A DNA stretch of 28,489 bases from sequence record NC_028787.1; one strand, written 5' to 3'. Positions 4,207 through 28,489 of this stretch are shown here, piece by piece. The number at the start of each line of letters is the position of its first letter. Within the stretch, counting starts at the first letter, position 1. The notes under the pieces were generated by a model. It was not told the DNA's origin. It did no database searches and was given only the letters and a program-made list of their open reading frames with translations. The translations under genes were made by a program, and so were the position numbers.

Positions 4207-4959
4207 ATGAGTTTAGTTAGTAGGATAATGGATGCAATAGAATTTCAGGTTACTGGTAAAGTTAAAAAATTTAAGTTACCATTTTGTTGTAGATTTATTC
4301 CAGGTTATGCACTAAGTGGTTTGTCTTTTAATGGGCATTATGTTAAAGGGGAAATTGGGATTACTTACAAAGAAGATTTACTAACAACTTTCAGTTCTTC
4401 AACTATTTACATAAAAGAAAATAATGAAATTAAAAAGAAACCTGTCAAAAATAAAGTACACGAATGTTGTTTATTTATTAATACTAATTCTTATTTTCAT
4501 TTGGCTGACCTAATTCCTGCTTACTTAATAAAGTTTCATCAACCATTTTATCTTTTTTCAAGTATAAGTTATGGTTATTTTAATGGTGAACGTTTATACA
4601 CTTATAAGGTTAGTACAATTCCACACTATGTTTTTGAAGAAGAGATTGAACCTACTGAAGAATTAGATGATCTTCTATACGTTGTAGGGGTAGCAGATGC
4701 ATACAAAAGAGGTTATTTTGAAAAAAACATGTACAATGAGAATAAGATTAAGGATTACATTTTCAAACCTTATCTTTATTTTGCTTATTATCTAAAAATG
4801 CATACTACTCTTTTACCACCACAACTAGAACAAGAGTTAGAAAGGAAAATAAAACCAAAATTTATTAACGAAATAGAGATTCCAAAAGAAATTAATGAAG
4901 AAGAAATAAACTCATGGCTTAAGAAGATTGATCTCCAGAATTTGCTAATTGTTCAATAA
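4207..4959 (+). CDS. Hypothetical protein (about 250 aa)
   Basis: Long ORF divergent from 4162; ATG at 4207 preferred to GTG 4198. Confidence 0.85.
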   Translation: MSLVSRIMDAIEFQVTGKVKKFKLPFCCRFIPGYALSGLSFNGHYVKGEIGITYKEDLLTTFSSSTIYIKENNEIKKKPVKNKVHECCLFINTNSYFHLADLIPAYLIKFHQPFYLFSSISYGYFNGERLYTYKVSTIPHYVFEEEIEPTEELDDLLYVVGVADAYKRGYFEKNMYNENKIKDYIFKPYLYFAYYLKMHTTLLPPQLEQELERKIKPKFINEIEIPKEINEEEINSWLKKIDLQNLLIVQ

Positions 4960-5356
4960 ATGTTGTCATGTATGTTATTTTTATGTTAAATAGTTCATAG
5001 ATCATTTGAGCAAAATCAGTATTTAAATTCTCAAAAATTTTGTTTATTCTTTTTCCACAGTCCTTGTTAAGCATGTTTAATACGTCATCTAAATGACAAT
5101 ACTTACATTGTTCAAAAATGTATGTTGGGTAGAAAATGGCGTATCCATTCCATTTCTCATTAAGTGAGACTTCTATTACCAATTTATCTTTAGGTTTCTT
5201 TAGGGGGTCATAATCTGGTAATTCCTCCAATTTAACGTTATTAGGAAAAAGGTGCATGTAACAAATTAGATCTTTGAAAAACCCCATGTCTCCATCTTTC
5301 ATAGTATTAACTTTTGGTATTATCAATTCCTTTACAACATAGTATTTACTGGTCAT
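4919..5356 (-). CDS. Hypothetical protein (145 aa)
   Basis: ATG at 5356 (MTSKYY) overlaps the end of the upstream gene; the longer ORF-track start lies well inside that gene. Confidence 0.8.
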   Translation of the reverse strand: MTSKYYVVKELIIPKVNTMKDGDMGFFKDLICYMHLFPNNVKLEELPDYDPLKKPKDKLVIEVSLNEKWNGYAIFYPTYIFEQCKYCHLDDVLNMLNKDCGKRINKIFENLNTDFAQMIYELFNIKITYMTTFIEQLANSGDQSS

Positions 5357-5645
5357 CTTTTTTCTCCTCCTTCTCTTTATAGTATTGATCAACTAAACAC
5401 TCAACTAATCTATAGAGGGCTAATCTTAGAGCAAAACCATCACAGACCTTAAGGGATTTTGCCAAGCTTATGACAGCATTCAAAATGGGGTCTGGTTGGT
5501 TAATTTCTATGAGCCCGTTATCATGGATTACACAACAATCTAACTCAATTTTGGGCATTGATTCATGTAGGGGATTTGCTTCACCAGTAATGTATGCGTA
5601 AATTACGTCCTGTAGAATTTTTTTACTTATTTTTTGTTTTGTCAT
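5346..5645 (-). CDS. Putative ribbon-helix-helix DNA-binding protein (99 aa)
   Basis: C-terminal IEINQPDPILNAVISLAKSLKVCDGFALRLALYRLV fits the strand-helix-helix RHH pattern. Confidence 0.5.
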   Translation of the reverse strand: MTKQKISKKILQDVIYAYITGEANPLHESMPKIELDCCVIHDNGLIEINQPDPILNAVISLAKSLKVCDGFALRLALYRLVECLVDQYYKEKEEKKDDQ

Positions 5646-5654
5646 GTACTCACC

Positions 5655-5864
5655 TCAAAAGATTTTTACCAAACTCTTTTTTGCAGAAAATGAGTCAATT
5701 TTAATTGTTCTCAAACCAATCTTTAATACACCATCCTCTTCTTGGGCTTTGTATACTTTTTTCAATAACTCTTTTAGTTTATCAGGGTTTTCATTTACAA
5801 CATAAGTTAATCTTGTATGCCATAAAATTTCTGGTAGGTTTTTTATAAAGAGTGAGGTTTTCAT
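5655..5864 (-). CDS. Small basic hypothetical protein (69 aa)
   Basis: Preceded by GTGACCAAAAATG start motif and TATA; GAGGTGAG RBS for the next gene at its end. Confidence 0.8.
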   Translation of the reverse strand: MKTSLFIKNLPEILWHTRLTYVVNENPDKLKELLKKVYKAQEEDGVLKIGLRTIKIDSFSAKKSLVKIF

Positions 5865-5906
5865 TTTTGGTCACATAAAATCTTACGTTTAGAGTTTAAA
5901 AGCTTT
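5862..5906 (-). promoter_or_regulatory. Early-type promoter with TGACC start motif
   Basis: Minus strand AAAGCTTTTAAAC...TTTTATGTGACCAAAAATG. Confidence 0.6.
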
Positions 5907-5978
5907 ATTCCAGTAGTGAAGTTAATCAGGTCAAAAATAAAGAAGGAATTTATGGGCTTGGAATTCATGATTACCTAT

Positions 5979-6022
5979 AAACTTTTTAATCTTTGGTTTT
6001 AATTATTAAGTGAGGAAACATG
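5979..6022 (+). promoter_or_regulatory. Early-type promoter, variant of the shared motif
   Basis: AAACTTTTTAATC...TAATTATTAAGTGAGGAAACATG. Confidence 0.6.
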
Positions 6023-6721
6023 AAAGAGTCAATCATAAAAGTAATTCCTTTCAATAAAGATCTAGTTTTTTCAATCAATTTACCTTACTCTGTATACTTA
6101 AACGATAAGTATCTAACAACTATTGATGCAGATGTTGATTTGAATAAATTCGAAAAGGCTCTTCTAACTGATGAGAAGTTAAAAGTACTAATGAACAAGT
6201 ATCTTGTGGCTGAAACATTATCACAGATTTATAGTCAAAAAGAACAAGAACTTGTTAAAAAATTAAATGAGCAGATACTACACAGTTTCATTTATGATTA
6301 TAAGGATTTATCTGGTTATTCTTCTGATGTTAAGAGAGAGAAGAGAGATAAGTATTTATGTTTTACAACGGAAAATTTTGAGGTTTGTACACATTCAAAG
6401 AAATACGAATTATCGGCTATCGTTAATGAAATTAGTGATGCGTTAAAGAATGTAGATTCAAGTCTGAAACTTACGATCTATTACGGCAAATACTCATTAA
6501 CAATTTTCATTAACAGTATTGAAGTTTATAGGAATGATGCTTTTGCTTTAAGAGATGTACTTAGTTACTTTAGAGATGAAATTAAAGAAGGAAAGCTTAA
6601 TGAGGTGATTAATTTATTGAAGCAATTAAAAGAGATTAAAGAAAAACAATTACCCGCCACTGATTATTTTCTAAGGATTAGTGATCGTATTAAAGAGATT
6701 GCTTTTCAATGTAAAGAATAA
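6020..6721 (+). CDS. Unknown protein, paralog family A (233 aa)
   Basis: Shares IIKVIP, DLNKFE, DVLSYF and KLNEVINLL with 11535-12299 (VIKEIP, DLNKLE, QVLSFF, KLSEVIGLM). Confidence 0.85.
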   Translation: MKESIIKVIPFNKDLVFSINLPYSVYLNDKYLTTIDADVDLNKFEKALLTDEKLKVLMNKYLVAETLSQIYSQKEQELVKKLNEQILHSFIYDYKDLSGYSSDVKREKRDKYLCFTTENFEVCTHSKKYELSAIVNEISDALKNVDSSLKLTIYYGKYSLTIFINSIEVYRNDAFALRDVLSYFRDEIKEGKLNEVINLLKQLKEIKEKQLPATDYFLRISDRIKEIAFQCKE

Positions 6722-6771
6722 TTTTTTGCTATTTCTTTAGGTTACTCCTATTTCTTTTATTTAATAATAAG

Positions 6772-7272
6772 ATGATAGTTATGCCAAGGGGAAAACCTAA
6801 TTTAGAGCCTGATCAAGTTATGTGTCCAAATAAGTATACTAGTAGACTTGTTGAGTATTGTTTACTTTATAGGACTAATTTAAATGTCTTTGAAGGTATG
6901 GGGCGGTATGAAAAAGGATACGTTGTATACCACGTTTATCCAGGAATCACTTATTTGAAGTTCAATGTAATGAAGAAACTAACTAAGACTGCTCCTTATT
7001 TTCTAACAATTTCAAAGTTTGAAATTATACCATCAACTTTCACAATAGAAGATGAACCGCTTTTGACTGCCGAGATTCCTCCAGAATGGTATGAAAAAAT
7101 CTTAGAAGACCCAAACGCCCCGCCACTGCTTAAAGCCGTCCTTGAGGCATTTCCTAAAGAGAAGGATGAGTATGCTTACATTCCTTCTTCAGAGTACTTT
7201 GAAGGTTATTGGAAAGATCAGGTTGAGGAAATTAAACGTTATCTTGAGTCTTTAAACGGTGAAGAAGCATAA
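6772..7272 (+). CDS. Hypothetical protein (166 aa)
   Basis: Clean ORF between T-rich intergenic segments. Confidence 0.85.
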   Translation: MIVMPRGKPNLEPDQVMCPNKYTSRLVEYCLLYRTNLNVFEGMGRYEKGYVVYHVYPGITYLKFNVMKKLTKTAPYFLTISKFEIIPSTFTIEDEPLLTAEIPPEWYEKILEDPNAPPLLKAVLEAFPKEKDEYAYIPSSEYFEGYWKDQVEEIKRYLESLNGEEA

Positions 7273-7312
7273 AGCTTTTTAAATTTTTTACTCAGATCTT
7301 TATTTGATCTGT

Positions 7313-7621
7313 ATGAAAGAAGTAGTAATTTCAAGTTATGATCAATTTTTGAGAGAGATAGAGAAAGCTAATGAAAAAGGGTATGATGTAAAATTAGTGA
7401 CTCCACAGGGGTTGGAGTATGTTTCTAAGCTTAGTGATAGTTTTGAAATAAATGCGGATGATGAGGATTTGACTATTTCTACAACCTATAAAAAAATGTT
7501 ATTAGAAGTACATAATGAATACGTTTTGGGTTGGTATCAAGGCGGAAAGAAAATTATTGTAGGGGAAAACAAAAACTTTGGAGAATCTCCTAAGCCTATG
7601 ATAGTTACCAAAGAGATCTGA
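7313..7621 (+). CDS. Hypothetical protein (102 aa)
   Basis: AAAGCTTTTTAAA TATA upstream; ATG at 7313. Confidence 0.8.
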   Translation: MKEVVISSYDQFLREIEKANEKGYDVKLVTPQGLEYVSKLSDSFEINADDEDLTISTTYKKMLLEVHNEYVLGWYQGGKKIIVGENKNFGESPKPMIVTKEI

Positions 7622-7662
7622 TTTTTTATGTCAAGTTTTCCTTTTTTTATCTATTAAGATAG

Positions 7663-7791
7663 ATGAGTATGTGGATACCATCCTTTGTTAAAGTTTTATT
7701 TGCATTATTTATTATAGGATTAATTATAGTTGTTGGGTATAAATTCATCTATCCCATGTTTAAAGAGAAAGTATCCGGTGAAGTAAAGTGA
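7663..7791 (+). CDS. Small single-pass membrane protein (42 aa), not in ORF track
   Basis: MSMWIPSFVKVLFALFIIGLIIVVGYKFIYPMFKEKVSGEVK, read manually. Confidence 0.6.
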   Translation: MSMWIPSFVKVLFALFIIGLIIVVGYKFIYPMFKEKVSGEVK

Positions 7792-7952
7792 ACGTTCTTA
7801 ATTTGTTAGCGGATGCAGACATAATTATCAACCTATTTTTTCTATTTCAAAAGAAAGTAAGTATAAAGGACGCATTAATTTTAACAACCATTACTTTAGT
7901 GATAATGTATACATACATTATAATGAAAGAAAAACAATTGACTTCATCTTAG
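7788..7952 (+). CDS. Small membrane protein (54 aa, GTG start), not in ORF track
   Basis: GTGA start/stop overlap with the previous ORF; hydrophobic DALILTTITLVIMYTYIIM. Confidence 0.45.
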   Translation: MNVLNLLADADIIINLFFLFQKKVSIKDALILTTITLVIMYTYIIMKEKQLTSS

Positions 7953-8195
7953 TAATGAACCTAATAAATAAAAGAAAAATAGAATACCAACTATAACTCC
8001 AAAAAGAACAAGTGTACCTATTAAGACGTATACAAAAGCATAACCTGTTGAGTATAAGGATTGTATAAAATTTTTTGTTAATACTAAGTTTCCTATAAAA
8101 AACGCAAAGAGAAATTCAAAAAGAGTGTCTGGTTTGATTTTGATTGTAATGCCTTTGTCCTTTAATTTTCTTTTTACTTTTCTCAGTGATTTCAT
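7944..8195 (-). CDS. Membrane protein, 2 TM segments (83 aa)
   Basis: Basic N-terminus plus two hydrophobic segments. Confidence 0.75.
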   Translation of the reverse strand: MKSLRKVKRKLKDKGITIKIKPDTLFEFLFAFFIGNLVLTKNFIQSLYSTGYAFVYVLIGTLVLFGVIVGILFFFYLLGSLLR

Positions 8196-8225
8196 AAGAT
8201 GAATTTATGGACAAAAAATAAAAAC

Positions 8226-8456
8226 TTAACTAATTACATCTGCTATTTTATCAAGTTTAGCCTGTAAATCTTCAGTCTGTTTTTTCACACTTTCAATCCA
8301 GTTCTTTATGTTATCTGCATTATCTTTTTTCATGTCAAACGTTTTTTCATAAGTTTCTTCAAATTCTTGATTCATAAATTTGAACTTTTGTTTGATTTGT
8401 ACTTTCAAGAGAAGCCTCTTACAGTCACACGAATAATTGATCTCCATGTTTATCAT
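8226..8456 (-). CDS. Small protein with C-terminal coiled coil (76 aa)
   Basis: IKNWIESVKKQTEDLQAKLDKIADV heptad pattern. Confidence 0.75.
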   Translation of the reverse strand: MINMEINYSCDCKRLLLKVQIKQKFKFMNQEFEETYEKTFDMKKDNADNIKNWIESVKKQTEDLQAKLDKIADVIS

Positions 8457-8532
8457 CTTATCTATAATAAATAATAGGAATACTAGTCAAGTTTCCACAA
8501 ATGTTCTTATGATTTAAAAGAGACAATACCTT

Positions 8533-8853
8533 ATGCCATCTGGAAATGCTCTTTTACCACAAGATCTAATGAATAAGTTAGGTGCTTTTGAAAAATTTTT
8601 ACCAAAAGAAGTTAAAAATAATTTAATAGCCATTAAAAATGCAAAAAGAACGTTTTCTATTCCTGTGAAGACAGAGCAGGGTTATTTGGTTATAGCCGGA
8701 ATTCTTTTAGATCAACCTGTACCAAGTCAATTATTATTTGATGAAGAAGATCTAAAGCTTATACTAGAAGCAGTAAAGAAAGCGTATCAAAAATTAGGAT
8801 TAGATCCTTATGAAGAACTTTGTAGAATTGCAGATACTAGTGAGCAGGTATGA
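8533..8853 (+). CDS. Hypothetical protein (106 aa)
   Basis: First gene of a translationally coupled unit (8533-10189). Confidence 0.8.
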
Positions 8854-9311
8854 GTGAGAGATTAAAAAAATACTTCACAGATGAAGAGATCCAGTTTATT
8901 GAGCAATTAGCAAAACAAAAGGGATTAAAAGAAACAGATGTAATTTATGCTTTAGCCCGTGAGATGATCCAGACATACCAGTTACGTTATGTAAGTGGTC
9001 AACAAGTATTAGCCATGTTAGATCTTTTAGCCATGAAACTACCACAATGGTTTGCCTTACAGTTAAACTTAGTTGGTCAGTCATCACTTCAAGTAACTAC
9101 ACTATCTAAACAATTATCTGCTCTAACACAACCAAGTACATTTGATAAGATAATAGAACTTCTGAAAACTACAGATGCACAAAAACTACTCTCAATGTTT
9201 GCTCCTATTTTGGCAAACCTATTTTCTTCACCGCAAAAGAGAGAAGATGATAATACAGATACTACACCACCTTCAAATAATGATAACCAAAATAGTGGTG
9301 AATGGTTGTGA
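8850..9311 (+). CDS. RHH DNA-binding protein with amphipathic C-terminal domain (153 aa)
   Basis: [37 protein letters not shown] matches the RHH pattern; ATGA overlap with the previous gene. Confidence 0.7.
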
Positions 9312-9526
9312 AATTGTACACGTTTGGTGAAGTCAAGATAAAAATCTTAGAAAATAAAGAAGAAATTGAGAGTAATGAAGTGGAGGGTTGTAGGTCATTA
9401 TGCGGTGATAAAGCTATTGAGTTGATTGGTGAAAAATTTAATCCATGTAAAAAAGACTGGTTATTCTGTCATCTAATTAAGGAAATTCAAGATAAGTATT
9501 TTATAATTCTAAAGGAGGTGGTATGA
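9302..9526 (+). CDS. Small Cys-containing protein, possibly metal-binding (74 aa)
   Basis: CRSLC ... CKKDWLFCH. Confidence 0.7.
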
Positions 9527-9685
9527 TTGGATAATAAGTGTCTTGAGCTTTTGTCAAAATTAGATGATTGTTTACAAGATCCTGAATTTCAGCTAATTTT
9601 AGTAATGAGGTTAATTAAAGTCCTTGGTACACTTAGTATTAATTTATTAGGTGATAAAAATGAACCAAGACACAGTGATCTGTAA
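9527..9685 (+). CDS. Small hypothetical protein (52 aa, TTG start), not in ORF track
   Basis: GGAGGTGG RBS then TTG; MDNKCLELLSKLDDCLQDPEFQLILVMRLIKVLGTL...; fills the gap in the unit. Confidence 0.55.
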   Translation: MDNKCLELLSKLDDCLQDPEFQLILVMRLIKVLGTLSINLLGDKNEPRHSDL

Positions 9686-9944
9686 GGATGGCTTTATGGT
9701 TGATACAAATACTGGTGAAGTTTTAGATAGGTGTTATGAGCTTGGTGAAACAGAACAAGATAAGGGTTTGAAGCATTATTCTGTTACCCCTCCTGTGCCG
9801 TATGTACCACAACATGTTATTGATAAGATGGCTACAAAAAACAAATGGTTGAAAGGGAAAGACCATTACATTAAATTAGAATTCAGGTTTGCTAAGAAAT
9901 TAAAGTATCTTGAGAGACTATGTTCTCAATCAAAGATCTCATAA
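9660..9944 (+). CDS. Protein with degenerate TFB-type zinc-ribbon-like N-terminus (94 aa)
   Basis: GGTGA RBS; VICKDGFMVDTNTGEVLDRC resembles the TFB ribbon hairpin (GxxVCxxCGxV). Confidence 0.45.
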   Translation: MNQDTVICKDGFMVDTNTGEVLDRCYELGETEQDKGLKHYSVTPPVPYVPQHVIDKMATKNKWLKGKDHYIKLEFRFAKKLKYLERLCSQSKIS

Positions 9945-10189
9945 AGATAGTAGAAAATAAGAAAGAATGTTTAGACTATGTACTTTACAGGTTAGACAAT
10001 GAAATAATTCTATTTACCAGAGGAGAACTTTTTTTAAAAAAGAAGAAGTTTAACTTGGAGAAATGTGATCATAGGATTTGTAAGCTTATTGCTGATAAAA
10101 TTATAGATGAATGTGAACAGAAAGAAAAAGGGATAGTTGATTGTTTGATTGAGAAAGAAGAGGAATTAGAAGAAAAAATGGTTTTTTAA
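9920..10189 (+). CDS. Hypothetical Cys-containing protein (89 aa)
   Basis: Overlaps the previous gene; ends convergently with 10186. Confidence 0.75.
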   Translation: MFSIKDLIKIVENKKECLDYVLYRLDNEIILFTRGELFLKKKKFNLEKCDHRICKLIADKIIDECEQKEKGIVDCLIEKEEELEEKMVF

Positions 10190-10905
10190 TCTTGGATTTT
10201 ATACTCATTTTCCAAGGTATAAGAGTTGTCTGCTATTTCTGTTAACATGTTTTCCAAATGAAACTTAGCATACTTGTATTCCTCTTGAGATTTGAAAATT
10301 ACATAAATCTGCATTAGTAACGCTGTCCTATCCACCGCCGAGACTGTTTTCTTTGTCATTTCGTTGAAGAATGATAAGACTTTCTCTATTCTAAATTCTG
10401 GTTTCTCTAAAGTTATGATGTCATGCCCGTTAAAGGCTATAACTATGTTATTCGAATTTTCGTGAATTTGTATAGTGTCAAAGTTCATTAACTGGTTTAG
10501 TACTTCACCGATTTTTGCTACAAAGCAGGAAATGTTTCTTCTATCGTTTATTATTAGACTAATGTCACTAGTATGAAACTGTGTGAAGCCATGATCAAAA
10601 GGTATTACTTCAGTACACACTTCATACGTTACTAAGTCTCCTAATTTCAAATCTGGAGAGGATTTGATAAGGTCTTTTAGTTTTTCTACTTTTTCCTCCA
10701 GATGACTATTATCAACTAACTCCTTTGCTCTTAACATCTTCTCAATTTGATCTACTAATTTATTTTCATTCCTTTTGACATTCTCCACAAATACTTTTAC
10801 ATCTGTTTGGGGTAATAGCCCCGCGTCTAATTTTATGTTGTCTAAATACAAGTTGTTTCCTATTATACTTAACTTGTGGTTTCCAATTGGTATTTCCATT
10901 TGCAT
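10186..10905 (-). CDS. Unknown protein, paralog family A (239 aa)
   Basis: EIPIGNHKLSIIGNNLYLDNIKLD / NISCFVAKI / IEKVLSFFNEM align with 11535-12299. Confidence 0.9.
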   Translation of the reverse strand: MQMEIPIGNHKLSIIGNNLYLDNIKLDAGLLPQTDVKVFVENVKRNENKLVDQIEKMLRAKELVDNSHLEEKVEKLKDLIKSSPDLKLGDLVTYEVCTEVIPFDHGFTQFHTSDISLIINDRRNISCFVAKIGEVLNQLMNFDTIQIHENSNNIVIAFNGHDIITLEKPEFRIEKVLSFFNEMTKKTVSAVDRTALLMQIYVIFKSQEEYKYAKFHLENMLTEIADNSYTLENEYKIQD

Positions 10906-10948
10906 AGAGGGTCACTTAATACTTTATCAGAGAGACTTATAAGTTTTG
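10903..10948. promoter_or_regulatory. Bidirectional promoter with palindromic TATA ACTTATAAGT (10935-10944)
   Basis: Perfect 10-bp palindrome between divergent genes; minus side carries TATTAAGTGACCC. Confidence 0.6.
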
Positions 10949-10972
10949 ATGCCAATCAACTCATGTGGTATC

Positions 10973-11434
10973 ATGAACCCAAACGGTCATACACTGGAAT
11001 TGGAATGGAATGAAAGAGTATGTTATAAAAATGCACGTGAAACGGTGTTTGCAAATAAGAGAATACTTGTACCTAAAGACCTTGAAGCAATAGCGGTTGT
11101 ATTTGAGAAGGATAGGTACAAAATTGCTTACTATGACTCCAATACATGGAGTATAGTAGACACTACTAACATTTCTCCAGATTCTAGTTATGTTCTTGAA
11201 TTACCTCAAAACTCTGATACACCTTATGCAGGAGATGACGGGGATTGTGCTTACATAGAGTCTATCAAACCTAATGTAGTATTTCCTGATTCTAATAGCC
11301 CGCTAATTATTGTGACTTCAATAAACAATAAAATAGAGTATTACGTTTTTGTACCTGATAAAGGATGGTACTCAATAAACAGACTATTCAAACAACCAGA
11401 AAAGAAAGCTAAACAATTAACTTCTACAGTATAA
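10973..11434 (+). CDS. Unknown beta-rich protein, paralog family B (about 153 aa)
   Basis: NGHTLELEWNE and PLIIVTSINNKIEYYVFVPDKGWYSI align with 12367-12801; start at MNPNG inferred from the alignment and TATA spacing. Confidence 0.85.
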   Translation: MNPNGHTLELEWNERVCYKNARETVFANKRILVPKDLEAIAVVFEKDRYKIAYYDSNTWSIVDTTNISPDSSYVLELPQNSDTPYAGDDGDCAYIESIKPNVVFPDSNSPLIIVTSINNKIEYYVFVPDKGWYSINRLFKQPEKKAKQLTSTV

Positions 11435-11446
11435 AATTTTTTTAAC

Positions 11447-11510
11447 GGGGTACCCCCTCAGATTTTTTACCCCTGTTTTTTGGAATAGGGGTTCTTATGG
11501 GGGTAACCCC
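11447..11510. repeat. GC-rich nested inverted repeats between convergent genes (possible bidirectional terminator or cruciform)
   Basis: GGGGTACCCCC(11447-57) ... ACCCCT(11469-74)/AGGGGT(11487-92) ... GGGGGTAACCCC(11499-510). Confidence 0.85.
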
Positions 11511-11534
11511 TAATCTTAAATAAAAATAAATACT

Positions 11535-12299
11535 TTATTCAACCGGTGTGTCTTCATCATTTTCTACATACTCTGGTTCTTCTTCTTGTTCATCTCTATA
11601 AGAATGGTCTATTATGTCTATGAATACCCCTCCTAATTCGTAATAAGTTAAAGTAAATTTGTCCTTTGACCAGAAGTATTTATACACATTGTTCATTAAC
11701 CCTATCACTTCACTTAATTTATCCTTATTTTCACTTATCTCATTAAAGAACGAAAGTACTTGTTCAATTGGTACATTTTCTAAATGAAGTACTGTGAACT
11801 TATTTAGCTCTATGTGAACATGATTTTTGTTCTGTATAACTCCTATTGAAACATCCATTCTAACTTCTCCAATTTTTTCTGATACCTTACTAACATAACA
11901 TGAAATGTTGTAGTCACTGTTTATGAAAACTCTAAAATGCTCTGCTAAGAACTTTACCCAACTCTCTGAATAGTCTACATGTGAGCACACCTTGGTACTT
12001 GAAAAGTTAAATAAAGAGATTGGTTTTGTGTTCAAGATCATCTCCTTCAACTTCTCCTGATAACCTTTAATTTTATCCTTCTCATCTTCAATTAGCTTCT
12101 TTAAGCTTTTCAAAACTTCTATTGCATGAATAATTTCAGTTTCGTTTTGTTTTATCAATTGCTCTAATTTGTTCAAATCTGTAGTGCCATAGGTATGCAC
12201 ATCCAATTTTATACCGTCCACAAAAATTTGGTTTCCTTTTATTACTATCTTGTGATTACCCTTTAAGGGTATTTCCTTAATAACTTGGGTTTTCGCCAT
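11535..12299 (-). CDS. Unknown protein, paralog family A, acidic tail (254 aa)
   Basis: EIPLKGNHKIVIKGNQIFVDGIKLD / NISCYVSKV / IEQVLSFFNEI. Confidence 0.9.
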   Translation of the reverse strand: MAKTQVIKEIPLKGNHKIVIKGNQIFVDGIKLDVHTYGTTDLNKLEQLIKQNETEIIHAIEVLKSLKKLIEDEKDKIKGYQEKLKEMILNTKPISLFNFSSTKVCSHVDYSESWVKFLAEHFRVFINSDYNISCYVSKVSEKIGEVRMDVSIGVIQNKNHVHIELNKFTVLHLENVPIEQVLSFFNEISENKDKLSEVIGLMNNVYKYFWSKDKFTLTYYELGGVFIDIIDHSYRDEQEEEPEYVENDEDTPVE

Positions 12300-12344
12300 T
12301 TTGGGTCAATAAATAATAAGTAGGTAAAGATTAAAAAACGTTTT
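12297..12344 (-). promoter_or_regulatory. Early-type promoter with TGACCCAAAATG motif
   Basis: AAAACGTTTTTTAATC...CTTATTATTTATTGACCCAAAATG. Confidence 0.65.
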
Positions 12345-12366
12345 GGTTTAAGAACGAAAGAAAAAA

Positions 12367-12801
12367 TTACTCATCTTTTATTTCAAACCAACCACGTTGT
12401 GGTACATACACATACCAAATTGTTTGTTTGTTCACCTCTGTTACTACCACAGTAGGTAAGTTTACATTTTGCGGATAAATGACATACTTATCTTCATCAA
12501 CAAACTTTTTGATGTCTGAACAAAGGAAATGTTTGCAAACAACTCTTGGCGGTTCATCTGATAATGGCACTCTGACAGTTAAACCAAGTGGTTGTGTGTT
12601 CTCTATCTCTTGTAATGTCCATTTTCCATTAAATTTTGCTACATAATACTTGTCTTCACTTTCAATTAGGGCTATTGAGACTTGTTGGTTGGGTGTAACC
12701 ACTTTTTTGCCGTTAAAAACGAATACATCTACTACACTAGAAAAAACATTCTCATTGTCTTGTAATTCTATGTATGCCCCGTTTTCCTTGATTTGTGCCA
12801 T
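12367..12801 (-). CDS. Unknown beta-rich protein, paralog family B (144 aa)
   Basis: NGAYIELQDNE and PTVVVTEVNKQTIWYVYVPQRGWFEI. Confidence 0.88.
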   Translation of the reverse strand: MAQIKENGAYIELQDNENVFSSVVDVFVFNGKKVVTPNQQVSIALIESEDKYYVAKFNGKWTLQEIENTQPLGLTVRVPLSDEPPRVVCKHFLCSDIKKFVDEDKYVIYPQNVNLPTVVVTEVNKQTIWYVYVPQRGWFEIKDE

Positions 12802-12863
12802 TTTGGGTCAAGTACATTTTGTCAGGAATAGTATAAAAACATTTTGGCATTTCTTTGTCAGGA
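12799..12863. promoter_or_regulatory. Divergent promoter region with TGACCCAAAATG motif and two TTGTCAGGA sites
   Basis: TTGTCAGGA at 12819-27 and 12855-63; the first lies between the TATA box and start of the 12801 gene. Confidence 0.6.
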
Positions 12864-12895
12864 TGACTTATCTTATTCTTTTCTAACATTAACTC

Positions 12896-13189
12896 ATGTT
12901 TACTTTAGATGAACTGTTCAATTTAGCCCAAAAAGATCAATTTAACTATCTACTAGTCTTTTTTACAGAAAATGGAGAAATCTATGACGCGTTAGCTTTT
13001 GATTTACTACAACCCCTATTAATAGAGATCATTAACAACTACTTATCTCTAGTTGAGAAATTAAATGAAAAAATCGTTGTTAAGTTCTACAAAGTAAGTA
13101 CAAGACAAGAAGTCAAAATTACTCAGATACCAATTTACATTCCTAATGATTCCACAAGTCAAACACAGATGAGAAGGGGTTATCTATGA
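12896..13189 (+). CDS. Hypothetical protein (97 aa)
   Basis: Coupled (ATGA overlap) to the glycosyltransferase. Confidence 0.8.
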   Translation: MFTLDELFNLAQKDQFNYLLVFFTENGEIYDALAFDLLQPLLIEIINNYLSLVEKLNEKIVVKFYKVSTRQEVKITQIPIYIPNDSTSQTQMRRGYL

Positions 13190-14127
13190 GCATAGAGTTA
13201 ACTTTCATTACTACAACCAACAGCGGTAGTTATGATAGGTTAGCTTCTAGACAGGCTTCTCTTCTTGAGAAAAAATTTGGAATTAAAAGTGAGATAATTA
13301 GATCTGCACAGATGCAAAAATCAGAAGTTCATGGCTCTCATGTAATCATTTACACTACATTCAACATTTTACCACAACTATACAAGATTTATGAAAGAGA
13401 TTTGAGAGGAAAAGAAGTTATTGCATTAATAGATAGTGCACTTTACACTATTCCTTATCTAATAATAGAGAAACTTTTGAAAGAACATAGAATTTATACA
13501 ACCTCTATGTTCAACCAAGAAAACTTTGAGAAGTTAGGTATTAAAATTCCCTATGTATCACACTTTGTACCAGATCCTAATACTTCTGGTAGAATCTTGG
13601 AATGGCATGATAGGAATTATGACTTCATTACTGTAGGCATTAATGAAACCGATTTTGATAGAAAGGGGCATTACTGGAATTGGATAGTGGAGAAATGGGG
13701 TTTTAAAACCGTAAGAGTCTGTTCAAATTGGTGTCCTTCTCCATTCATGAGCAATGTTAGTGATGATAAGCTCTATGAACTTTATGCACACTCAAAATGG
13801 TATTTAGCCACTAGTCATGCTGAGACTCCTCACTTACCATTAATTGAAGCTTATGCGTTTGGTACTCCTGGTATCTGTCTAAATGCTCATGAGTTTAGGT
13901 TTATCTGTAGAGGTATAACATTTGAGCCCGCTTATGTTAATGTTAAGGGTATGAAGAATTTCTACTTTGCAGAAATTGACGCTTCATCTTTTATCTCTGC
14001 TGTTGGTGAGAGTAGAGATGTCAAGAAGTTTGAAACATACTCACAGATAGCACGTCAGTATTTTGAAGAGAAATTTTCTATGAATAAAAGACTTGACGAA
14101 TTTATGAAACTTGTTGGTCTTGATTAA
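13186..14127 (+). CDS. GT-B fold (GT4-like) glycosyltransferase (313 aa)
   Basis: RKGH motif and YLATSHAETPHLPLIEAYAFGTPGI (E-x7-E donor-binding motif), C-terminal FSM. Confidence 0.9.
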   Translation: MSIELTFITTTNSGSYDRLASRQASLLEKKFGIKSEIIRSAQMQKSEVHGSHVIIYTTFNILPQLYKIYERDLRGKEVIALIDSALYTIPYLIIEKLLKEHRIYTTSMFNQENFEKLGIKIPYVSHFVPDPNTSGRILEWHDRNYDFITVGINETDFDRKGHYWNWIVEKWGFKTVRVCSNWCPSPFMSNVSDDKLYELYAHSKWYLATSHAETPHLPLIEAYAFGTPGICLNAHEFRFICRGITFEPAYVNVKGMKNFYFAEIDASSFISAVGESRDVKKFETYSQIARQYFEEKFSMNKRLDEFMKLVGLD

Positions 14128-14128
14128 G

Positions 14129-14314
14129 ATGATTTATAAGAAGTTAAACGTTTATTTGAGGAATTGTAAAGTGATGAATAAAGTGGAATTTCCTCATTCT
14201 GTTCAATACGTTCTCACTTGTCCAGAATTAGTTATCATTGAGTGTAGAGGTACCAATCAATGTATAGAACTCTATAGACAAAAAGAGAAAGAAGTAAAAA
14301 AGGTTAAGATTTAA
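14129..14314 (+). CDS. Small Cys-containing protein (61 aa)
   Basis: ATG directly after the glycosyltransferase stop; four Cys. Confidence 0.7.
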   Translation: MIYKKLNVYLRNCKVMNKVEFPHSVQYVLTCPELVIIECRGTNQCIELYRQKEKEVKKVKI

Positions 14315-14574
14315 AAATTAAGAATCAAATCCTGAAGGATAGCTTTATAATTTCTTTTTTCATCTTCATCCATAGCATTTATCATGTTTTCCCAAGTTTC
14401 CTTGATCATTTCTCCTATCTCATCCTTTGGATTCACTACAATTTCGTAACCATTTGAGATTCTTTGTACTTTGACTTTTACATGTTGATTTTCAACTTCT
14501 GACCACCACGTTGAATCAACAACTTTCTTTCCTTGTCCTAATAAAGTCAAAATAGCTATTTGCCAATCTAACAT
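14311..14574 (-). CDS. Unknown protein, paralog family C (87 aa)
   Basis: YEIVVNPKDEIGEMIKETWENM; AGGTGAG RBS. Confidence 0.85.
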   Translation of the reverse strand: MLDWQIAILTLLGQGKKVVDSTWWSEVENQHVKVKVQRISNGYEIVVNPKDEIGEMIKETWENMINAMDEDEKRNYKAILQDLILNF

Positions 14575-14585
14575 TTCCTCTCACC

Positions 14586-14852
14586 TTAACTATTGTATAG
14601 AATAAAATGGAGTACATCAATGTATGTGTCTCTTACTAATCCTTCACTTTCTCTTAGTTTATTATAAGCTTTAACAATTAAGTTTCCAACTTCATCCTTT
14701 GCCTGTAGACTAATTCTCCAGAATTTTCCTTCTTTTTTAGCTTTTATGAATAGGTGCTCTGTGTCTAACTCTGCAGGAAAATTAATTTGCTCTAACCTAT
14801 TGTCTTTTGAAGCATTTAGAAGAGTTTCAAATACAAGATCCGCGTATCTCAT
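14586..14852 (-). CDS. Unknown protein, paralog family C (88 aa)
   Basis: MRYADLVFETL ... WRISLQAKDEVGNLIVKAYNKL; GGTGA RBS. Confidence 0.88.
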   Translation of the reverse strand: MRYADLVFETLLNASKDNRLEQINFPAELDTEHLFIKAKKEGKFWRISLQAKDEVGNLIVKAYNKLRESEGLVRDTYIDVLHFILYNS

Positions 14853-14861
14853 TATAATCAC

Positions 14862-15128
14862 CTAACTATTGTTTATGATAAACCACAAAGCAAATGATAG
14901 TAAATCTCTTGTTAACGCCTCACTTTTCTTTAGTTTCTCATACGCCCTCCTAATTAATTCACCTATCTCATCTTTTGGATAGAGGGTTATTTCCCAATAG
15001 TTGTCTTGTTTCTGAGCTATAATTTGTATGTGCTCAGTATCTAATACACCTGGAAAATCAATCTTTTCTAATCTATCTTTTTCTGAAGCTTGGGTTAAGG
15101 TTTCATAAACCAATTCTGGATACCTCAT
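14862..15128 (-). CDS. Unknown protein, paralog family C (88 aa)
   Basis: MRYPELVYETL ... WEITLYPKDEIGELIRRAYEKL. Confidence 0.88.
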   Translation of the reverse strand: MRYPELVYETLTQASEKDRLEKIDFPGVLDTEHIQIIAQKQDNYWEITLYPKDEIGELIRRAYEKLKKSEALTRDLLSFALWFIINNS

Positions 15129-15222
15129 TTTGGGTCACTTAATAATAAGAAATTAGAGGATTAAAAACTTTTAGACATCTTACTGACAAGATGATTCTAC
15201 ACTCTTTTTCTTTCACTGACAA
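15126..15222. promoter_or_regulatory. Early/late boundary: TGACCCAAAATG promoter plus two ACTGACAA sites
   Basis: Minus strand AAAAGTTTTTAATC...CTTATTATTAAGTGACCCAAAATG; ACTGACAA at 15182-89 and 15215-22. Confidence 0.65.
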
Positions 15223-15246
15223 TAGGTTTTTATGAAAAAGTAAGGT

Positions 15247-15507
15247 ATGAAAACCGTTTTTTCGTTTCCCTCAGAAGACGAAACAGTCAAGAAGAAAATG
15301 ACAGTTGAAGAAGCTCTTAACCATGTTAAAACACACGCTTATTTCCACATTGATGACATTCACAGTTTGTTAGATTTTCTTTTTCATTATGGGTTTATAA
15401 TAAGATTAGGAGAACATTGTTACATTGCAGAAAATGAAGAATACATGATTAGAATTGACAATAACGGTAATGGTGAAATAGTAAAAAAGGGTGGAAATAA
15501 TGCTTGA
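15247..15507 (+). CDS. Hypothetical protein (86 aa)
   Basis: First gene of the plus-strand block. Confidence 0.75.
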   Translation: MKTVFSFPSEDETVKKKMTVEEALNHVKTHAYFHIDDIHSLLDFLFHYGFIIRLGEHCYIAENEEYMIRIDNNGNGEIVKKGGNNA

Positions 15508-20749: not shown

Positions 20750-20995
20750 ATGAACCTACAAAACTATGATAAATTAGTAAATTATCTCCTAACACACATT
20801 AGATCTATCCATTCAGGTACACTTTATAAAATCTTGAAAAAAGATAAAAGAATTAAAACTTATTTAGGAGTTAAAAAACTAAGAAAGAAATGGGTTGATA
20901 ATTTAGCAGTCAAGGGTTATGTGAAAGGAAAAGGTTCAATTACTGACCCTGAACAAGTTAAAGAAATACTTGATAAATTTTTTAGCCAAAAGTAA
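20750..20995 (+). CDS. Basic protein, possible winged-helix DNA binder (81 aa)
   Basis: Three helices ending WVDNLAVKGYV, a wHTH-like L..KG.V pattern; Lys-rich. Confidence 0.45.
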   Translation: MNLQNYDKLVNYLLTHIRSIHSGTLYKILKKDKRIKTYLGVKKLRKKWVDNLAVKGYVKGKGSITDPEQVKEILDKFFSQK

Positions 20996-20998
20996 GGT

Positions 20999-21145
20999 AT
21001 GGAAAACTACACTGAACTAATCCCTCAACCATACTATGATTCTATTATTAATTACATTACTCTTAGAATCCTAACTAGAATAGTTGATTATGAGCCTAAA
21101 AACAAAGTTGAAATAAGCCCAAGAACAGTATTAAGGATTTACTAA
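20999..21145 (+). CDS. Small hypothetical protein (48 aa), not in ORF track
   Basis: AAGGT RBS; MENYTELIPQPYYDSIINIITLRILTRIV...; fills the gap exactly. Confidence 0.6.
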   Translation: MENYTELIPQPYYDSIINYITLRILTRIVDYEPKNKVEISPRTVLRIY

Positions 21146-23180: not shown

Positions 23181-23207
23181 TATCAGGTTTTTCTTATTCT
23201 GTAAGGT

Positions 23208-23375
23208 ATGAACTGGAAACTTATAGCCGGGTTAATTTCTGTATTTGTTTTAGGTTTTGTCATAGGTAGACTTAAAGTATCTGTTCACACATGCCCCGCC
23301 ATGAGATCACAAAGAGTAAAAGAAGCTATTAGGAGAATTCAAGAAATGGACGATAGTTCTGACAACTATCTGTGA
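23208..23375 (+). CDS. Small single-pass membrane protein (55 aa), not in ORF track
   Basis: MNWKLIAGLISVFVLGFVIGRLK...; AAGGT RBS. Confidence 0.65.
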   Translation: MNWKLIAGLISVFVLGFVIGRLKVSVHTCPAMRSQRVKEAIRRIQEMDDSSDNYL

Positions 23376-28294: not shown

Positions 28295-28423
28295 ATGCAT
28301 TACTACCTATTTTATTTAATTGTCTTGTGGATCCTTTATGCTATAATCTTACTCCTATTAGCTGATTCTGTTCACAAACAGACTAAACGAATCGTTGATG
28401 AAATGAAAAAGCGGGAAAACTAA
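28295..28423 (+). CDS. Small single-pass membrane protein (42 aa), not in ORF track
   Basis: MHYYLFYLIVLWILYAIILLLLADSVHKQTKRIVDEMKKREN; stop codon lies inside the ITR. Confidence 0.6.
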   Translation: MHYYLFYLIVLWILYAIILLLLADSVHKQTKRIVDEMKKREN

Positions 28424-28489
28424 GTTGAGAACCCTCACAGAAAACCTTAAATACCCTCACCAACAAACAACAAAATGGGATCAAAAATG
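28420..28489. repeat. Right inverted terminal repeat (70 bp)
   Basis: CTAAGTTGAG...GATCAAAAATG is the reverse complement of 1-70. Confidence 0.98.

Follow-up and report, generated by a model that had tools for sequence, protein, structure and literature searches.

A promoter and short-leader cassette shared by six accessory genes of Acidianus bottle-shaped virus 3

The window analysed here is a whole stretch of DNA of 28,489 nucleotides (nt), which was found to match the complete record KP282674 / NC_028787 (NC_028787.1) of Acidianus bottle-shaped virus 3 (ABV3), a member of the Ampullaviridae from Iceland, from end to end at 100% identity. Of the 66 genes annotated in the record, those for a protein-primed family B DNA polymerase, a thymidylate kinase and a glycosyltransferase are the only ones that can be recognised, and the record looks complete because perfect 70-bp inverted terminal repeats stand at its ends (1-70 and 28420-28489). 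Ampullaviruses are among the least understood archaeal viruses, with almost no annotated genes, no transcriptome and no known counter-defence genes. An original prediction, made from the letters of this window, had proposed that several early genes share a TATA-N-TTATT leader behind a strong promoter, and that three gene families among them, called A, B and C, encode anti-defence or host-takeover proteins. We found that six genes (gp08, gp09, gp22, gp24, gp25 and gp31) share a block of about 49 nt that ends in the start codon, in which an A-rich B recognition element (BRE), a TATA box, an AT-rich stretch and T(T/G)GACC are followed by CAAA-ATG. This block is called the cassette below.

Six ABV3 genes share one promoter cassette

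The cassettes, and a weak seventh member of the set, lie at the following positions, with the start codon of each of the six genes in brackets.

5862-5910, minus strand: cassette of gp08 (5864), reading GAATAAAGC-TTTTAAAC ... TTTTATG-TGACC-AAAA-ATG
5974-6022, plus strand: cassette of gp09, family A (6020), with the leader variant GTGAGGAAAC-ATG
10903-10951, minus strand: cassette of gp22, family A (10905), with the palindromic TATA CTTATAAG at 10936-10943
12297-12345, minus strand: cassette of gp24, family A (12299), with exact TTGACCCAAAATG
12799-12847, minus strand: cassette of gp25, family B (12801), with exact TTGACCCAAAATG
15126-15174, minus strand: cassette of gp31, family C (15128), with exact GTGACCCAAAATG
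7267-7315, plus strand: promoter of gp11, the weak seventh member, TTTGATCTGT-ATG

The string TGACCCAAAATG occurs exactly three times, always on the minus strand (12297-12308, 12799-12810 and 15126-15137), and variants of it stand at gp08 (GTGACCAAAAATG), gp22 (TATTAAGTGACCCTCTATG) and gp09 (TATTAAGTGAGGAAACATG); all six leader strings that had been quoted for these genes lie immediately upstream of annotated start codons. About 0.003 exact copies would be expected by chance, according to our estimate from base composition. When up to two mismatches were allowed, 10 matches were found against 3.3 +/- 1.6 in shuffles, and 10 was reached in none of 100 shuffles, so the motif is enriched over background, a point on which the original prediction was to stand or fall. 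The AT-rich sub-block TTATTAAGTGA alone, with mismatches allowed, was not enriched in ABV3.

Anchored on the ATG, the six upstream regions (-48 to +3) had a mean pairwise identity of 55%, compared with 38.6 +/- 5.5% for all other gene pairs, a level that none of 20,000 random six-gene sets reached. The sharing of regulatory sequence was assessed by this anchored identity and by a position-weight matrix, in place of the published MEME/RSAT cut-off of 1e-8, and the position-weight scan of ABV3 returned no site beyond the six. The similarity ends upstream of about -46. All these confirm that the six genes share the cassette far beyond chance. The cassettes of gp09 and gp31 form the inverted repeat I6, and that of gp24 comes after a T-run, TAATTTTTTC, which directly adjoins the gp25 stop codon.

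In the promoter consensus of Sulfolobales, RNWAAW-TTTAWATR has its centre about 27 nt upstream of the start, positions -12 to -1 hold an AT-rich proximal element, and the initiator is T-purine; Sulfolobales mRNAs are mostly leaderless. At all six ABV3 sites, a purine- or A-rich BRE directly precedes an 8-bp TATA box (gp24 reads CCAAAACG-TTTTTTAAT); the TATA forms behind it are TTTTTAAT, TTTTAAAC, TTTTTATA or CTTATAAG. The TATA core (TTTAAT, TTTAAA, TTTATA or TTATAA) ends 29-31 nt before the ATG at each of them, in agreement with the strong box about 30 nt upstream that had been predicted. A little conserved spacer of about 11 nt separates the TATA from the position of the proximal element, which is held by TTATTAA or a T-run, and the T-G of (T/G)TGAC sits 26.5 nt downstream of the TATA centre, at initiator spacing. 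The cassette thus shares all four elements of the canonical promoter at canonical spacing, but it keeps a leader of 7-8 nt (ACC-N-AAA) whose sequence is conserved and whose length is fixed across the virus lineage. Judged from this anatomy, the cassette is quite probably a complete, lineage-specific Sulfolobales core promoter with an initiator and a short leader. The predicted TATA-N-TTATT leader held up as a shared, enriched cassette and not as a special regulatory leader: for the most part it consists of the usual elements of a core promoter (a proximal element and an initiator), and only the conserved ACC at +2 to +4 and the fixed leader length go beyond the generic pattern.

In the mechanism that we propose, the G of T-G-A-C-C would be initiator and transcription start, with the BRE/TATA about 26-27 nt upstream and the AT-rich TTATTAA/TTTTT acting as proximal promoter element. 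The mRNA is predicted to begin 5'-GACC(C)AAA-AUG, giving an untranslated leader of 7-8 nt. The host TBP, TFB and RNA polymerase would recognise the cassette without any viral factor, and strong transcription might be expected from the moment of genome entry.

A 98%-identical ABV3 variant was represented by contig L038 of the independent sequencing run SRR24079460, which corresponds to 10436-11951 of the window. Its 67-nt promoter region between gp22 and gp23 (10906-10972) carries 0 substitutions, and the synonymous divergence of the flanking genes is 4-9%. The palindromic TATA CTTATAAG (10936-10943) in this region is some 30 nt away both from the gp22 ATG and from an in-frame gp23 ATG at 10973. 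By its position, it is probably one bidirectional TATA serving both genes. The gene call for gp23 in the variant contig starts at the ATG equivalent to 10973, which is probably the true start; the annotation would then be 8 codons too long.

Genes behind the cassette and their relatives

The cassettes head the following genes and short units; the family B gene gp23 is listed with them.

4919-5864, minus strand: unit gp08-gp07-gp06, all three ABV3-specific, the downstream genes with Shine-Dalgarno-type sites
6020-7272, plus strand: unit of gp09 (family A, 233 amino acids (aa)) and gp10
10186-10905, minus strand: gp22, family A, 239 aa, monocistronic
10949-11434, plus strand: gp23, family B
11535-12299, minus strand: gp24, family A, 254 aa
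12367-12801, minus strand: gp25, family B, 144 aa
14311-15128, minus strand: operon gp31-gp30-gp29, made up of three family C paralogues in tandem (87-88 aa)

As had been proposed, each promoter stands ahead of a single gene (gp22, gp24 and gp25) or of the first gene of a short unit (gp08, gp09 and gp31), and all three family A genes, one family B gene and the first family C gene are among them. Families A (gp09/gp22/gp24, 25-30% identity), B (gp23/gp25, 27%) and C (gp29/gp30/gp31, 28-53%) are, from their sequences, true paralogue families, which bears out the original grouping. The family A products are large, with 233-254 aa. The cassette proteins are soluble and mildly acidic (isoelectric point about 5) and have no transmembrane segments; the conserved right-hand gene block is rich in predicted transmembrane proteins and probably comprises the virion genes. 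The ratio of nonsynonymous to synonymous polymorphism (pN/pS) between ABV3 and the variant contig was 0.08-0.19 for gp22, gp23 and gp24, which indicates purifying selection and hence functional genes.

No homologue of any of the six cassette genes, or of families A, B and C, was found in the related viruses Acidianus bottle-shaped virus (ABV) and ABV2, in which the polymerase, the glycosyltransferase and the gp16-gp20 and gp42-gp66 blocks are conserved. ABV in Acidianus convivator is the sole system in culture. Families A, B and C had no Pfam match above threshold, their PHROG matches were their own families only, and a PDB sequence search gave no match; tblastn of gp24, gp25 and gp31 against 50,697 phage and archaeal-virus records returned ABV3 only. 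The gp24 model (mean predicted local distance difference test score (pLDDT) of 87.9, with confidence spread widely over five models) runs from an N-terminal beta domain through a long helix into an alpha/beta domain and closes with a long helix at the C-terminus. It had no fold match in the PDB, and its matches among viral structures were its own paralogues only. The gp25 model is all-beta (mean pLDDT 82.6) and likewise had no fold match in the PDB; a Pfam match of gp25 to Staphostatin_A (E = 5e-4) was below threshold, had no support from the fold search and was set aside. Family A was also compared with the conserved 243-258-aa ampullavirus proteins gp05/ORF247 and gp01/ORF243 and proved unrelated to them.

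Relatives of family A were found by one route. Scans of IMG/VR and the JGI metagenomes for relatives of family A and gp17 gave ABV, ABV2 and ABV3 only, and a word-indexed protein search gave no relatives of A, B or C except the 98% ABV3 variant. Only when 1.84 billion representative proteins were scanned in full with HMMER did 11 distant family A relatives appear; 9 of them were traced, all to assemblies of SRR28178317, SRR28178318 and SRR24079460. A 1347-aa repeat protein (P0017) was rejected as a spurious match (hhalign probability 0.16%), its repeats inflating the score. In the related contigs, family A forms tandem arrays of 5-8 copies, in which members of about 235 aa are flanked by more distant members of 262-274 aa. 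The contigs with such arrays are listed here, the first three being from SRR28178317.

L042, 916-7326: family A array
L045, 732-6223: family A array
L053, 818-4804: family A array
L041, L043, L044 and L050-L052: further contigs of the array-bearing set

On one side the arrays are bordered by a gp47-like gene; on the other, a gp63-like gene lies further along. A conserved gene of 93-95 aa comes after them and is followed in L045 by the gp63-like gene. Many TATA boxes within the arrays have a GAGAATT-ACC element upstream. Families B and C are absent from these contigs, and SRR24079460, the run that holds the ABV3 variant, also holds array contigs. Taken by sequence, the ampullavirus lineage has in family A a large gene family that is diversifying. 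For one family A gene of L045, the start that was called (3200) likely lies 27 nt too far downstream; an upstream in-frame ATG (3173) has the leader TTTGACCAGCT-ATG.

The cassette itself is found across the same lineage. ORF158, ORF150 and ORF133 of ABV and their ABV2 homologues carry it (the ORF158 pair reads CAGACCCAAAATG; ATGACCAAAAATG), and these genes are 35-55% identical between ABV and ABV2, among the most divergent, compared with about 74% for core genes. Exact TTTAAATA occurs in ABV, ABV2 and the sequencing-run contigs. Among 30 complete family-A-like contig genes, 14 carry TGAYY between -14 and -7, in almost every case together with a TATA-like box some 30 nt upstream, and three more are one base off; an unrelated 50-aa gene at L045:531 carries exact TTGACCCAAAATG. 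A consensus of 31 sites reads caaaaA..tTTtTaaa-N20-tTtttTTGAcCaaaaATG, and in 26 of them the T of TGA is found at -9 relative to the ATG; as presence of the motif was the ground for selecting these sites, the consensus is descriptive only. In every genome examined, what stands behind the cassette is non-core and fast-evolving, be it a single gene or a short unit.

The composite of TATA and initiator is absent from two other Acidianus viruses, Acidianus rod-shaped virus 1 (ARV1) and Acidianus filamentous virus 1 (AFV1), and from the left arm of SIRV2 (rod-shaped virus 2 of Sulfolobus islandicus). BLAST of the gp31 cassette against phages returned ABV3 itself and AT-rich chance matches, with no other archaeal virus, and a 15-mer scan of viral contigs gave ABV3 and chance matches only. 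These results support, at the sequence level, that the cassette is a trait of the ampullavirus lineage, that is, of ABV, ABV2 and the uncultivated relatives. A pattern scan of a genome collection for the composite promoter had chance bacterial matches among the matches listed and was uninformative on host promoters.

Candidate roles of the cassette and its genes

The premise that anti-defence genes of Sulfolobales viruses have conserved strong promoters is published. Bhoobalan-Chitty et al. (2024) described a conserved block around a strong BRE/TATA that is shared by acrID1, acrIIIB1, aca8 and other early genes of SIRV2, and proposed Aca8 as a repressor of these early promoters (PMC11065993). 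They predicted anti-defence genes by two criteria, a strong promoter and regulatory sequence that several genes of a genome have in common, which gave 354 genes in 57 viruses, two of which were validated as inhibitors of type I-A CRISPR and of a toxin-antitoxin system (PMC11065993). Ampullaviruses were not in their virus set, so the present analysis extends promoter-guided finding of anti-defence genes to a family outside it. The six ABV3 genes show both sequence features and are non-core.

The comparison with rudivirus acr promoters that had been suggested showed a common layout: SIRV2 early promoters read TTTAAATA-N23-GGTGA-N7-ATG, and both viruses have a TATA, about 22-23 nt, (G)GTGA/TGAC, 6-8 nt and the ATG. 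As at acrID1, acrIIIB1 and aca8, a virus-specific block is conserved around a strong BRE/TATA, and, as at early anti-defence loci of the SIRV2 type, the genes behind it are single, non-core, for the most part orphan and in many cases paralogous. The downstream block differs (TTGACC-N4-ATG in ABV3, GGTGA-A7 in SIRV2), and the ABV3 genes are central (5.8-15.1 kb), whereas anti-defence genes of the SIRV2 type are terminal. AcrID1 of rudiviruses (12 copies in SIRV2) offers a parallel to family A, since it is likewise multi-copy, highly divergent and located in variable regions, many copies having their own strong promoter; the 5-8 tandem copies in ABV3 relatives are comparable with this expansion. 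The two have no sequence or fold similarity, however, and family A proteins (about 235-270 aa, with beta, coiled-coil and alpha-beta parts) are much larger than typical anti-CRISPR proteins (Acrs).

On these grounds, the cassette units, which encode families A, B and C together with gp08, gp07 and gp06, would form a co-expressed accessory set, probably early and acting on the host, with counter-defence as the leading candidate role by analogy with the anti-defence genes of rudiviruses, lipothrixviruses, bicaudaviruses and fuselloviruses. We give this explanation as a whole, a core promoter with a fixed leader driving such genes, a little better than an even chance. The anti-defence role taken by itself, which rests on the analogy, is held tentatively, at clearly less than even. 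The proposal that A, B and C are anti-defence proteins thus keeps its support from the two sequence features and from the soluble, acidic, orphan and non-core nature of the products, and lacks any likeness to known Acr or Aca proteins. A stronger version, in which TTGACC-N4-AUG is a private early-expression tag, possibly with a viral regulator or special translation, and family A comprises hyper-expanded host-defence inhibitors of new fold, appears doubtful to us.

Several observations weigh against the proposed role. Pfam, tblastn and PDB searches gave no homology of the six genes to AcrID1, AcrIIIB1, AcrIIIB2, AcrIII-1/DUF1874, Aca8 or defence-related families, and no recognisable known anti-CRISPR gene or Aca8 homologue was found in ABV3. 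The published pipeline ranks genes whose transcription starts near the start codon as low-probability, with no numeric threshold (PMC11065993), and the predicted ABV3 leader has only 7-8 nt, compared with about 12 nt for SIRV2 early genes by the same reasoning. Family A proteins are large, their arrays in the relatives are flanked by homologues of the conserved genes gp47 and gp63, a setting that a structural or assembly role would also fit, and the likeness of family A promoters may partly stem from duplication of gene plus promoter. Canonical promoter elements do not account for the conserved ACC at +2 to +4, and the start site, strength and timing of the cassette are all inferred from its letters.

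The cassette may instead be a strong constitutive ampullavirus promoter without temporal or anti-defence meaning, its cargo serving other accessory purposes, for instance in assembly or egress, in host range, or in modulating replication or chromatin. This is rather unlikely in our judgement, although all sub-blocks but ACC match generic promoter elements, the same BRE/TATA sequences also stand on highly expressed host housekeeping genes (PMC11065993), and both the size of family A proteins and the place of their arrays would suit it. ABV3 has other promoter and start flavours (the leaderless gp02 and gp04, and a separate TAAGGT-ATG class), the cassette is found only on non-core, fast-diverging genes in three lineages, and the products have no transmembrane segments, unlike those of the right-hand block. 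The shared sequence could also be a by-product of duplication, the promoters having been copied with the paralogues and not yet diverged. Three of the six sites do head family A paralogues, tandem copies in the related contigs each have the cassette with the upstream GAGAATT-ACC element, and the gp09 upstream region resembles that of its closest sequencing-run relatives. Unrelated genes carry the cassette, however (gp08, gp25, gp31 and the 50-aa gene at L045:531), the 12-mer is exact while the paralogous proteins are only 25-30% identical, the similarity is confined to functional elements and ends at -46, and the promoter of the 98% variant has no substitutions. Inheritance by duplication is thus a contributor in part only, and as the explanation of the sharing it is very improbable.

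Two further possibilities concern the TGACC region and are compatible with the explanation that we prefer. In the one, TGACC(C) at the start site would be an operator for a viral regulator, such as the ribbon-helix-helix (RHH)-like gp17, in a regulon with auto-shut-off of the Aca type. We regard this as decidedly unlikely. In its favour, the conservation of ACC exceeds what a canonical promoter requires, the cassette is confined to the lineage, gp17 is conserved (65-67%) with a weak NikA/RHH match, and Aca8 has the proposed role in SIRV2 (PMC11065993); against it, no dyad or direct-repeat symmetry surrounds TGACC, the RHH assignment of gp17 is below threshold (E = 0.009), and paired CTGACAA repeats occur at only two of the six promoters. 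In the other, the 8-nt leader would be a translation signal, either a degenerate Shine-Dalgarno (GTGA/TGAYC with the 16S rRNA 3' end) or a special initiation of fixed length. Internal genes have TAAGGTGAT equally far from the ATG, GGTGA is found at -12 to -8 in SIRV2 early genes, and the leader length is fixed, with T at -9 in 26 of 31 sites. In gp24, gp25 and the majority of the relatives, however, the sequence is TTGACC, in which TGA is all that is left of the Shine-Dalgarno core, the predicted start site would cut the element, and TGATCC would, as reasoned and not computed, pair better with 16S than the preferred TGACC, which makes this possibility improbable.

The explanation of an accessory set behind a core promoter with a fixed leader provides a short list for testing, made up of six promoters and of about twelve genes that belong to three orphan families, and the tag TATA-N20-TTGACC-N4-ATG finds equivalent accessory genes in ABV, ABV2 and the uncultivated relatives. 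Should the proteins inhibit Sulfolobales defences, their folds would be new among inhibitors; otherwise the cassette still offers Sulfolobales genetics a compact strong promoter.

Other start contexts, repeats and genome ends

Besides the cassette, at least two other start contexts are found in ABV3. Internal operon genes have a strong Shine-Dalgarno site, TAAGGTGAT. In gp02 (the DNA polymerase, 3286) and gp04 (4162), the TATA ends at -23, so that both would be leaderless in the strict sense and form a promoter class apart from the cassette genes. A further shared context consists of a T-run, about 8 nt and (G)TAAGGT abutting the ATG (15224-15251, 20976-21003 and 23185-23212; also at gp36, 16094, and gp60, 23725) and was recovered independently as direct repeats D2 and D7. 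It is also present in ABV and ABV2, and TTAAG(T/C)T-ATG occurs in the family A arrays of the related contigs. Its T-run is too near the ATG for a promoter, and its AGGT lacks the spacer for a Shine-Dalgarno role.

The repeat CTGACAA has 8 copies in the genome, 5 of them intergenic, and 4 form two direct pairs whose copies lie 33-36 nt apart.

12819-12825 and 12855-12861, minus strand: CTGACAA pair in the divergent region gp25/gp26
15183-15189 and 15216-15222, plus strand: CTGACAA pair in the divergent region gp31/gp32

At the matching position gp22 has CTGATAA. The pairs are candidate binding sites of a regulator; as a general operator of the cassette, CTGACAA was rejected, being present at two of six promoters only. 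Among the small proteins, the gp17 product (8850-9311) shows the highest conservation between ABV3 and ABV/ABV2 (65-67% identity). A pattern typical of RHH proteins stands at its N-terminus, it has the sub-threshold NikA-like Pfam match given above, and by these sequence features it is a candidate transcription regulator.

An Rfam scan of the window gave no RNA family, and scans for bacterial sigma-70 promoters and intrinsic terminators showed no enrichment, as expected for an archaeal virus. Read outward, the ABV3 tips end ...CAAAATGGGATCAAAAATG-3', which is similar to the promoter leader GACCAAAAATG; the resemblance may be a coincidence. The termini of ABV and ABV2 differ from those of ABV3 and read CCCCCC...

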